From Macrostomum lignano (taxonomy: Eukaryota), in contig NIVC01001256.1 of assembly GCA_002269645.1 (NCBI GenBank), positions 62,001 through 126,000 on the forward strand: DNA of 64,000 nt. Direction: 5' to 3'. Under the pieces are notes generated by a model. It did no database searches. It worked only from the letters and a program-made list of their open reading frames with translations, and was not told the DNA's origin. Positions 28,739 through 34,675 of the stretch are shown piece by piece. Made by a program: the position numbers and the translations under genes. Each line of letters opens with the position of its first letter. Position 1 is the first letter of the stretch.

Positions 28739-29659
28739 TAAATAATTGCAAAACAAAATTGAATATATGGGCTTCATATCTACTAAAGATATAATTCTAA
28801 TCTAATATTTGCTTTCTATCCAGTTTGCTTTTCTGGATTTTTCAGTTCACAAAACTATATTTAACTATATTTACTTTGTGCTATGATCCTCTTGTAGAAA
28901 TTAACTACTATTGATGTGATATGATTATGATTGTAAGACAATAAGAAGTCTCACTTTTGTCTTATAATCACCTTCATATAATCTCCCGATTCAAATGATT
29001 GCAGAACAAAATGAATATATGTGAACATATAAAGGCTTTGGATCTTGGTTATGCTTGCATTAAGTTTCATTTTTGTTATCTTTTTATATAAGACCAAGAT
29101 TGCCATATACTATGATGGTCATGGCTAGGATTAGAGTTGCCTAAAATGAGAGCTAATCTATTATTGGATAGCTTGAGATAGATAAATATGGGGTTGCAAT
29201 TCATGGATTATTAGGTTAAAGAAAAAATGTTCTGCATTCATTCTTTCTGCATTCAATTTATTGATCTTTTCAAGCCAGTAGAAATTCCAAGAAGAGGCTC
29301 ACCTATAGCATCCCTGTCTTAATATATATTTTTCATAGTCAGAATATGTTGCATAGTTTCATACAAGTATACTGAGATATGCCTAGGAATAAGATAGGAA
29401 AGTCTTAAAGTGAGAGTATCATGCTCATCCTAGGGCATAACCTAGGGATTCACCCAGCCATTTCTATTGGCAACACACACATGTAAGTTGCTATTGGACA
29501 GAATAGTAGTCACGTGACAACTCTCAGCCAATAGCAACTAAAAATAAAACATATCTAAATACAACATCTAGAGCCATCTTGATAGTTTAACTTTGAGCTT
29601 TTTGAATTCTAGCAGGTAGGCAAAAGAGCCTAGTAATGCCTACTGCTAGTATACTGATA
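28739..29659 (+). repeat. 921-bp direct repeat, copy 1 (left target-site duplication of the LINE)
   Basis: Matches 33755-34675 at a constant offset of 5016 at both ends. Confidence 0.95.
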
Positions 29660-29701
29660 CTATACTGATATACTGATATACTATACTAATATACTGATAC
29701 T

Positions 29702-29845
29702 GGGGAAGACGCCCTCAAGAAGGACGATTTTGCCGCCTACATCGGAGCGTGGAAGATCGTCTTCCACCTGCTGCTCAGGCGTCGTCCAGCCGGCGATCGG
29801 CGCCGAGGTGAGTCCGTGAGCTCGGATAGCTCTGGGAACGAGTAA
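29702..29845 (+). CDS. C-terminal 47 aa of retrotransposon ORF1 ([22 protein letters not shown]...SGNE*)
   Basis: The frame is open from the 5' truncation point and ends at TAA 29843-29845, overlapping the ORF2 ATG. The resemblance to Loa-clade ORF1 ends is from memory. Confidence 0.6.
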
Positions 29846-32800: not shown

Positions 32801-33662
32801 TGGAGCGGGTATTGCCATTTTCCACGAGGGTAAGATGCTTCTCCAGGAAAGTCTGCACCTCGGTGAGAACACCTCAGTTTTCCAAGCTGAAATTTGCGCC
32901 ATTGAGCAGTGTGCCCAGCAACTGTTTCAGGCGAACATTAATAATTTTGACATTAATTTCTACACTGATAGCCAAGCTGCTATTAAGGCCTTAACCACTG
33001 AGAATATCTCCGCTGCTACAGTATCTCAATGCCACCGCAGTGTGCAATCTCTCTCAGTCCTTAACAGGATTAGAATTATCTGGACACCTGGTCACAGCAA
33101 CATCCTGGGCAACGAGCTCGCGGACTCTCTCGCCAAGGAGGGCAGCAACCCAGACGGCAACCACCGTCTGATGAGGCTACCCACCCCCAGGTCGCAAGTC
33201 ACCCGCCATATCAACAGGTGGCTCCATCAGCAGCACCAGCTCCACTGGAACAGCTGCACCGAGTACAGGCAGAGCCGCTCTGCCATGCCTAACCTGAACA
33301 GGAAAGTCTCTGATTATCTGATTTCGCTTAACAGAACCGACCTCAGGGAGATGTGCATGGTCCTAACCGGCCACGGATTCTTCCAGAGACATATATCGTT
33401 GCAAACCGGTTGCCCTCCCACCTGTCCCTTCTGTGGCATAGGAGAGGAGACCGCGGAGCATCACGTCACCTTCTGCCCTTACTTCAACAAGGCGCGGCAC
33501 AAATACCTCGGCCACCCCCAGCGGATGGACGAGCTGACCACCGCGGACAATATCCGAGACCTCCGCGCCTTCGTCCGGGACTCCGGCCGGATGAGGGTCG
33601 CCGATGCCTCCACTGCGGACCTGCCGACTACTGGCGGGGACTGGGCGCACCCCCAAGGCTAA
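29845..33662 (+). CDS. Retrotransposon ORF2 polyprotein (APE endonuclease, reverse transcriptase, RNase H, CCHC knuckle), one frameshift at the C-run 30286-30297
   Basis: APE motifs are [31 protein letters not shown] and SDH. RT motifs are [39 protein letters not shown] and KYLG. RNase H motifs are [20 protein letters not shown] and [19 protein letters not shown]. The terminal knuckle is [15 protein letters not shown]. The frame of the 30651 ORF is open back to 30297. Confidence 0.93.
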
Positions 33663-33754
33663 TCCTTGTGCTCTTTTACCTTGGGGTTGCGATAGGGGCC
33701 TCGCGGCCTATTCGCGGCGCCTGCGCCCCCCGTCAGTAGTAAGTAAGTAAGTAG

Positions 33755-34675
33755 TAAATAATTGCAAAACAAAATTGAATATATGGGCTTCATATCTACT
33801 AAAGATATAATTCTAATCTAATATTTGCTTTCTATCCAGTTTGCTTTTCTGGATTTTTCAGTTCACAAAACTATATTTAACTATATTTACTTTGTGCTAT
33901 GATCCTCTTGTAGAAATTAACTACTATTGATGTGATATGATTATGATTGTAAGACAATAAGAAGTCTCACTTTTGTCTTATAATCACCTTCATATAATCT
34001 CCCGATTCAAATGATTGCAGAACAAAATGAATATATGTGAACATATAAAGGCTTTGGATCTTGGTTATGCTTGCATTAAGTTTCATTTTTGTTATCTTTT
34101 TATATAAGACCAAGATTGCCATATACTATGATGGTCATGGCTAGGATTAGAGTTGCCTAAAATGAGAGCTAATCTATTATTGGATAGCTTGAGATAGATA
34201 AATATGGGGTTGCAATTCATGGATTATTAGGTTAAAGAAAAAATGTTCTGCATTCATTCTTTCTGCATTCAATTTATTGATCTTTTCAAGCCAGTAGAAA
34301 TTCCAAGAAGAGGCTCACCTATAGCATCCCTGTCTTAATATATATTTTTCATAGTCAGAATATGTTGCATAGTTTCATACAAGTATACTGAGATATGCCT
34401 AGGAATAAGATAGGAAAGTCTTAAAGTGAGAGTATCATGCTCATCCTAGGGCATAACCTAGGGATTCACCCAGCCATTTCTATTGGCAACACACACATGT
34501 AAGTTGCTATTGGACAGAATAGTAGTCACGTGACAACTCTCAGCCAATAGCAACTAAAAATAAAACATATCTAAATACAACATCTAGAGCCATCTTGATA
34601 GTTTAACTTTGAGCTTTTTGAATTCTAGCAGGTAGGCAAAAGAGCCTAGTAATGCCTACTGCTAGTATACTGATA
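33755..34675 (+). repeat. 921-bp direct repeat, copy 2 (right target-site duplication)
   Basis: Begins within the last TAA of the retrotransposon tail and matches 28739-29659. Confidence 0.95.

Follow-up and report, generated by a model that had tools for sequence, protein, structure and literature searches.

Target-site duplications (TSDs) around insertions of long interspersed nuclear elements (LINEs) are usually 5-20 bp long. TSDs in the kilobase range are rare, but cases have been documented. For the human L1 element in HeLa cells, TSDs longer than 100 bp accompany up to 10% of the events assayed, and in cells deficient in nucleotide excision repair most L1 TSDs exceed 100 bp, 38% of those being longer than 1 kb (PMC5223499). 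Extremely long TSDs are associated with 5'-truncated L1 insertions, as PMC2912911 states in citing Gilbert et al. In mutation-accumulation lines of Chlamydomonas, over half of the Dualen-4b insertions have flanking duplications with a median of 900 bp, for which two endonucleases have been tentatively blamed (PMC9977147). L1-linked tandem duplications of 1-10 kb, termed "large TSDs", occur in tumours and in L1-expressing clones (bioRxiv 10.1101/2024.12.14.628481). Here we describe a LINE copy flanked by an exact 921-bp direct repeat in the genome of Macrostomum lignano. The locus lies in a stretch of 64,000 nucleotides (positions 62,001 to 126,000 of the forward strand of contig NIVC01001256.1, assembly GCA_002269645.1), which we call the window and to which all coordinates refer. 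We consider that the repeat is probably a TSD of 918-921 bp generated in one event of target-primed reverse transcription (TPRT) by a young M. lignano LINE.

The initial annotation of this locus presented a LINE TSD of about 0.9 kb as a novelty. This was overstated, because the studies cited above (PMC5223499, PMC9977147, bioRxiv 10.1101/2024.12.14.628481) had already documented kilobase LINE TSDs. What is new here is the organism and a LINE family in which only an APE endonuclease domain is present. A literature search returned no description of TSDs of M. lignano LINEs.

Human L1 insertions with long TSDs (Gilbert 2002/2005, Symer 2002), as they are summarised in PMC5223499 and PMC2912911, resemble the M. 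lignano case in several respects: TPRT of the APE type, a 5'-truncated insert, a duplication in the kilobase range, and a far second break that was invoked to account for it. They are, however, engineered events in human cell lines and carry poly(A), whereas the M. lignano LINE is a resident copy in a reference genome, encodes RNase H and has a (GTAA)n tail. The duplications made by Dualen-4b_cRei (PMC9977147) are of about the same size as the one described here, and they arose de novo in germline-equivalent events. Dualen elements have two endonucleases, a restriction-like one (RLE) and APE, whereas only the APE domain was found in the M. lignano LINE. The high proportion of Dualen insertions with long duplications (more than half) also has no counterpart here, since no family-wide tendency was seen for the M. 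lignano LINE in a test on gene models, which is a weak one. The tumour L1 duplications share the order duplication, insert, duplication, but are somatic and come from cancer or experimental clones. Among invertebrates, bdelloid rotifers have R9 LINEs whose TSD of 126 bp is far over the usual length (Gladyshev & Arkhipova 2009, as cited in PMC9977147). R9 is site-specific and the length of its TSD is fixed by the endonuclease, whereas the M. lignano duplication is seven times longer and probably incidental.

The evidence begins with the repeat itself. An exact comparison of positions 28739-29659 and 33755-34675 (both on the forward strand) gave identity at all 921 positions, with 0 mismatches and a constant offset of 5016, as the initial annotation had reported. 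The maximal exact run ends precisely at these coordinates. Over the 40 bp beyond its two ends identity falls to 17.5% and 25%, i.e., the outer flanks are unrelated. An exact repeat of this length is far beyond chance. The segment has only two copies within the window and is its sole large dispersed repeat; the remaining self-matches are all minisatellite arrays. The left copy, with 32% GC, appears to be AT-rich intergenic or promoter DNA of the host with its original context on the left side. The right copy has its original context on the right side, where it runs into a unit consisting of a small open reading frame (ORF) and a gene for a PUS1-type pseudouridine synthase. The Rfam scan of positions 27000-36000 revealed no RNA gene in the segment.

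The 4095 bp between the two copies (29660-33754) contain one long reading frame. The Pfam domains found there are PF14529 (Endonuclease-reverse transcriptase, APE; E = 6.5e-20), PF00078 (RVT_1; E = 1.9e-30) and PF00075 (RNase H; E = 4.4e-13), and the translation shows a CCHC motif at the C-terminus of ORF2. The insert is an APE-type LINE, i.e., a non-LTR (long terminal repeat) retrotransposon with an endonuclease and a reverse transcriptase in one ORF, and the original identification as such a retrotransposon is confirmed by the three Pfam domains. Its domains, in the order APE-RT-RNase H-CCHC, and its tail of the TAA type suggest that it may belong to the I-group clade (I / Nimb / Ingi / Tad1 / LOA-like, with RNase H).

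The element occupies positions 29703-33754 on the forward strand, about 4.05 kb of an estimated 4.9 kb, as delimited by Pfam domains and by matches to M. lignano gene models. It comprises the C-terminal 46 codons of ORF1 (29703-29845, forward strand; translation matching residues 56-79 of gene model P0001), ORF2 with the APE endonuclease, reverse transcriptase, RNase H and C-terminal CCHC motif (29845-33662, forward strand; also aligned to P0001), a 3' untranslated region (UTR) of 72 bp and a tail. The tail, AGTAG(TAAG)3TAGTAA (33735-33757, forward strand), is a (GTAA)n-like simple repeat that directly abuts the target and has its last TAA (33755-33757) in common with it. The start of the tail (…PPSVVSK*) recurs in gene models of other copies, P0039 and P0043. 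No Pfam match was obtained in ORF1. At 29843-29847 the stop codon of ORF1 overlaps the start codon of ORF2 in the motif TAATG, which is compatible with translation of ORF2 by termination and reinitiation.

ORF2 is open save for one frameshift in a C-run at 30289-30294, where six C residues are present and seven are needed for the reading ...DVPPPLLQEL... found in P0001. The frameshift may be a homopolymer error of long-read assembly. Many other M. lignano models (P0003-P0010 and others) splice out exactly the same part of the endonuclease domain (…YLDIQED|…), and this suggests the same C-run indel in many assembled copies, either as a systematic homopolymer error or as a shared lesion.

A protein search found the LINE in dozens of M. 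lignano gene models, with local alignments mostly 86-100% identical. The matching stretches of P0001 are 99-100% identical to the insert, and a short N-terminal APE piece is 95% identical. Because 74 of the fetched proteins carry the LINE at more than 80% identity and the alignments fall mostly in the range given, the family is abundant and very young, with near-identical copies. Models from other loci (P0010, P0013, P0014 and others) have a complete ORF1 of about 300 amino acids (aa) upstream. Every ORF1-containing model ceases to match the window at 29705; therefore the copy in the window is 5'-truncated inside ORF1 at about 29703 and has lost roughly 0.8 kb. This changes the extent of the element as first annotated. 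It starts near 29703 rather than at 29660, and positions 29660-29702 are junction filler.

Cluster members of ten LINE models were UniRef or MetaClust entries, or JGI and NCBI metagenome proteins of distant relatives. P0011 and P0021, together with their clusters (JGI metagenome contigs of about 5.2 kb), are LINEs 52-55% identical to ours and are annotated as bacterial "ribonuclease HI"; one such metagenome LINE lies in an NCBI metagenome-assembled genome labelled Kangiellaceae (a gammaproteobacterium). These copies are likely to be eukaryotic (invertebrate) contamination of the bins. A metagenome scan with the 3' end of the LINE gave no match, and exact look-ups of P0001 and of the small ORF did not find their contigs.

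The two junctions of the insert differ in character. On the 3' side, the sequence is …GTAAGTAAGTAG|TAAATAATTGC at the tail junction and …TTTTTACT|TAAATAATTGC at the left flank, so that tail and target overlap by 3 nt, TAA. This comparison bears out the 3-nt TAA microhomology between the tail and the second copy that had been noted originally. Because these 3 nt may belong to the tail or to the target, the duplication is 918-921 bp long. Such an overlap is as expected when a nicked bottom strand ending in …TTA-3' primes on an RNA tail ending in …UAA-3'. With its TAA microhomology, AT-rich T/A site and intact tail, the junction to 28739 has the look of canonical TPRT.

On the 5' side, LINE homology begins only at approximately 29703-29705. 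The preceding 43 nt (29660-29702, forward strand) are a filler with the structure C-TATACTGATA-TACTGATA-TACTATACTAATA-TACTGATA-CTG, in which perfect 10-mer copies start at 29661, 29669 and 29690 and one further copy is degenerate. The filler thus represents at least four reiterations of the final 8-10 nt (…GTATACTGATA) of the left copy. In the right copy, one TACTGATA unit is followed directly by …GTTCCCACC; therefore the reiterations arose with the insertion, and no microsatellite was there beforehand. The filler shows that the attachment of the LINE 5' end involved a DNA 3' end whose last nucleotide is exactly 29659. It could have been produced by iterative microhomology-templated synthesis, either template jumping of the reverse transcriptase or end joining of the polymerase-theta type, the choice between these enzymes being our inference.

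Five lines of evidence argue that the 921-bp segment is host DNA. First, an older short repeat (28671-28769, forward strand) spans the left edge of the duplication. It has a direct paralogue at 28929-29021 (about 80% identity over 98 columns) and a second paralogue, inverted, within 27670-27760. The alignments of the two run unbroken across the position equivalent to 28738/28739; the left boundary is therefore no element terminus but ancestral sequence of the host. The degenerate repeat crossing the left boundary, and with it the continuity of the left copy with host DNA, had been proposed in the initial annotation; both hold, with the repeat extended to 28671-28769 / 28929-29021 and the third, inverted copy added. 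Second, the segment has no match, in any frame, in the 74 LINE-containing M. lignano gene models from other loci. It had been suggested that attachment of the segment to LINE copies at unrelated loci would point to an element-borne repeat, and none of these 74 models shows such attachment. Those models from other loci that read through the 3' UTR (P0010, P0013, P0098) continue into different sequences. Third, the GC content of the segment (32%) is within the range of the surrounding intergenic DNA (29-38%), and that of the LINE is 55%. Fourth, what lies 5' of 29705 in full-length copies is coding sequence of ORF1 and not the 921-bp segment. Fifth, the segment has neither TG…CA termini nor a short TSD on its outer sides, and the right copy is not followed by a second tail.

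The region just left of the duplication also contains inverted-repeat pairs with 75-89% complementarity (27692-28768; 27766-27809/28324-28367; 27950-27989/28325-28364) and a direct repeat spaced by 181 bp, which suggests one or more elements resembling miniature inverted-repeat transposable elements (MITEs). The first nick of the LINE falls inside a short repeat that is present three times in the region left of and at the duplication.

The most economical account of these features is a single TPRT event, which would have proceeded as follows. The endonuclease would nick the bottom strand opposite 28738/28739, in TTTTTACT^TAAATAA. The freed 3'-OH (…TTA-3') would anneal to the RNA tail and prime synthesis of cDNA, and reverse transcription would abort inside ORF1, leaving a 5'-truncated copy. 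The top strand would break 921 nt downstream, after …GTATACTGATA (29659), through imprecise second-strand cleavage or through an unrelated nick or a replication-repair end. Iterative copying guided by microhomology would then link the 3' end at 29659 to the cDNA, by one of the two routes named above, and would leave the filler. Finally, fill-in of two complementary single-stranded 3' overhangs of 921 nt would duplicate the segment. A duplication rather than a deletion is expected because the top-strand break lies downstream of the bottom-strand nick. The initial annotation had likewise read the locus as a LINE insertion with the second break about 0.9 kb from the first nick, and this reading gains support from the LINE domains, the 5' truncation, the tail microhomology, the host continuity and the polarity of the breaks.

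Several points weigh against a single event. All sequence evidence on the duplication comes from one assembled sequence. The window may come from the published M. lignano assembly, which was made with Canu from PacBio continuous long reads and polished with Pilon, from a line that has extra chromosome copies, and which includes 180-312 Mb of duplicated sequence (PMC5730564). The M. lignano assembly has also been described as redundant and derived from a hidden allotetraploid (PMC12801592). Pilon polishing with multi-mapping reads could homogenise two copies of a repeat. In addition, the motif GTAA occurs at 29633-29636, 23-26 bp upstream of the top-strand break, and given this motif an ordinary insertion with a short TSD at the 5' junction is conceivable. 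Finally, 15 chimeric gene models from other loci, in which host sequence stands on either side of the LINE, were compared for host peptides present on both sides, and none was found (at most 6 shared residues); this is a weak test, as predicted introns can hide duplications. Long TSDs thus do not appear to be typical of this LINE family, as far as such a gene-model test can tell.

The alternative that survives best draws on the same points, and we regard it as rather unlikely. It supposes two independent LINE insertions in the same orientation, at 28738/9 and at 29659/60, on different homologues or homeologues, which were merged by an assembler chimera or by unequal crossing-over. The family is abundant and its copies are near-identical, and the GTAA priming site 23-26 bp before 29659 permits a normal TSD there. 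Two merged insertions would give an identical sequence, so that sequence alone cannot tell them from a single event. Under this alternative, nevertheless, one family must have inserted twice, in a single orientation and no more than 0.9 kb apart, into separate chromosome copies, a coincidence that we put very roughly at below 1% per homologue, estimated from one LINE copy per 64 kb. A misjoin or a crossover must then have occurred within a repeat of 4 kb, a length normally spanned by PacBio reads, and the LINE carries no signs of being composite. A related artefact, the false duplication of haplotypes from a single heterozygous insertion, was rejected as implausible, since the junction between the tail and 28739 must exist in real molecules and an overlap of 3 nt cannot make an assembly join.

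It seems doubtful to us that the segment was instead duplicated in tandem by replication or repair (break-induced or microhomology-mediated restart), with LINE cDNA captured at the junction or primed at an existing lesion, so that second-strand cleavage by the element would be irrelevant. The templated filler of 43 nt is typical of polymerase-theta or microhomology-mediated repair. An imperfect palindrome with a 13-bp stem (29609-29649, forward strand; counterpart at 34625-34665) ends 10 nt before the top-strand break, and the DNA fold of 34600-34700 has an energy of -12.9 kcal/mol (z = -2.8); any influence of the palindrome on the break is speculative. The 3' junction, however, resembles that of canonical TPRT in its intact tail, TAA microhomology and AT-rich T/A site. 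This scenario also overlaps heavily with a single TPRT event and differs from it mainly in what made the second break.

It is barely credible that the 921-bp repeat belongs to the element, as LTR-like terminal repeats, as 5' or 3' UTRs of tandem copies or as a 3' transduction: direct repeats around a core encoding reverse transcriptase are superficially LTR-element-like and the TATACTGATA reiterations can be mistaken for an octamer-repeat LINE tail, but full-length copies have ORF1 5' of 29705, the ORF2 stop, the 72-bp UTR and the tail all precede the right copy, the GC contents differ (32% vs 55%), the left boundary is ancestral, and the segment is absent from the other LINE-bearing models. 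The individual variants were rejected as well. As LTRs, the repeats would lack TG…CA termini (they start with TAAAT and end with TGATA) and a 4-6-bp TSD outside (TTACT lies outside the left copy and GTTCC outside the right one); what the core encodes is an APE endonuclease, and the Pfam search gave no integrase or protease match in it. The place of a LINE 5' UTR is taken by ORF1 in full-length copies. Reading the segment as a 3' UTR, in a tandem copy that is 5'-truncated and ends in (TACTGATA)n, does not fit, as the right copy has one unit and no tail, (GTAA)n precedes the segment and the left boundary is ancestral. A 3' transduction does not fit either: no second tail follows the end of the right copy (…TGATA|GTTCCC), and the segment is found before the 5' junction as well.

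If the structure is real, it is a natural case in an animal, transmitted through the germline, in which a LINE duplicated some 0.9 kb of host DNA and with it a likely promoter. Small segmental duplications of this kind are missed by standard callers of transposable elements, in which the TSD length is capped at 20-30 bp. Recombination between the two identical copies of 921 bp could also delete the insertion at a later time. The structure is a useful flag for quality control of assemblies in this notoriously redundant genome.

A much broader proposition is that kilobase TSDs are a recurrent output of this APE-only M. lignano family, as they are for Dualen. We hold this to be improbable. If it were true, a second endonuclease would not be required for such duplications, the family would be a systematic duplicator of M. 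lignano promoters and exons, and the duplicated host promoters could drive 5'-truncated copies that have no promoter of their own.

The putative promoter is a cluster of three CCAAT/ATTGG boxes around a palindromic E-box, GTCACGTGAC, present in both copies of the segment. In the left copy (29466-29532, unstranded) the motifs are ATTGG at 29466 and 29493, GTCACGTGAC at 29509 and CCAAT at 29528, and all of them are repeated at +5016. The cluster in the right copy (34482-34548, unstranded) lies 270-336 bp upstream of the ATG of the small ORF. These motif positions agree with the ATTGG-CCAAT cluster originally noted in both copies. The sequence GTCACGTGAC (29509-29518 and 34525-34534) is a perfect 10-bp palindromic E-box between inverted CCAAT boxes, with the third ATTGG 27 bp upstream. 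We take it to be a CLEAR-type motif, bound by factors of the TFEB/USF class. The cluster as a whole looks like a housekeeping promoter of the NF-Y/bHLH-ZIP kind.

The left-copy cluster precedes the truncated LINE by about 170 bp and is in sense orientation to it. The insertion would thus amount to promoter capture, as a copy of a putative host promoter is placed before a truncated LINE that would have none of its own, and this copy could drive chimeric LINE transcripts. On the other side, it is a reasonable inference from the arrangement of the copies that the small-ORF/PUS1 unit keeps its full native 921-bp upstream region despite the insertion. The retained region may explain why an insertion 143 bp from a start codon has survived.

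The small ORF directly downstream of the right copy (34818-35078, forward strand) encodes 86 aa with a hydrophobic central stretch in translation, and no Pfam match was found in it. It lies 195 bp upstream of the start codon of PUS1 on the same strand, and the two may form a bicistronic or operon-like unit. The first coding exon of the PUS1-type pseudouridine synthase (35273-35596, forward strand) was identified by phmmer against PUS1 chains in PDB (7r9f_A, E = 3e-9). This exon alone has no Pfam match, and a protein search with it returned nothing at E ≤ 1e-10. About 85 bp after the exon there is a 28-bp minisatellite (35680-36380; 25 copies, 93% match), presumably inside the first intron of PUS1.

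The window has an unusually high density of minisatellite arrays. Their periods are 17-48 bp and their copy numbers reach 73, and several of them give rise to long spurious ORFs. Examples are found at 1197-3393, 4010-4711, 6361-6927, 50427-51260, 54248-55025, 57800-58833 and 59553-61285. There are also simple tracts: GA-rich at 25941-27345, (TC)n at 61995-62891 and (TCAG)n at 63622-64000. Positions 53307-53378 are matched, at 79% over 24 aa, by N-terminal non-LINE portions of two LINE-bearing models, P0006 (residues 325-348) and P0085 (residues 84-107); this is probably another dispersed repeat unrelated to the duplication. On the reverse strand, an ORF at 7536-8663 has the domains CID (E = 1.6e-19) and CREPT (E = 3.1e-37) of an RPRD1-like regulator of the C-terminal domain (CTD) of RNA polymerase II.

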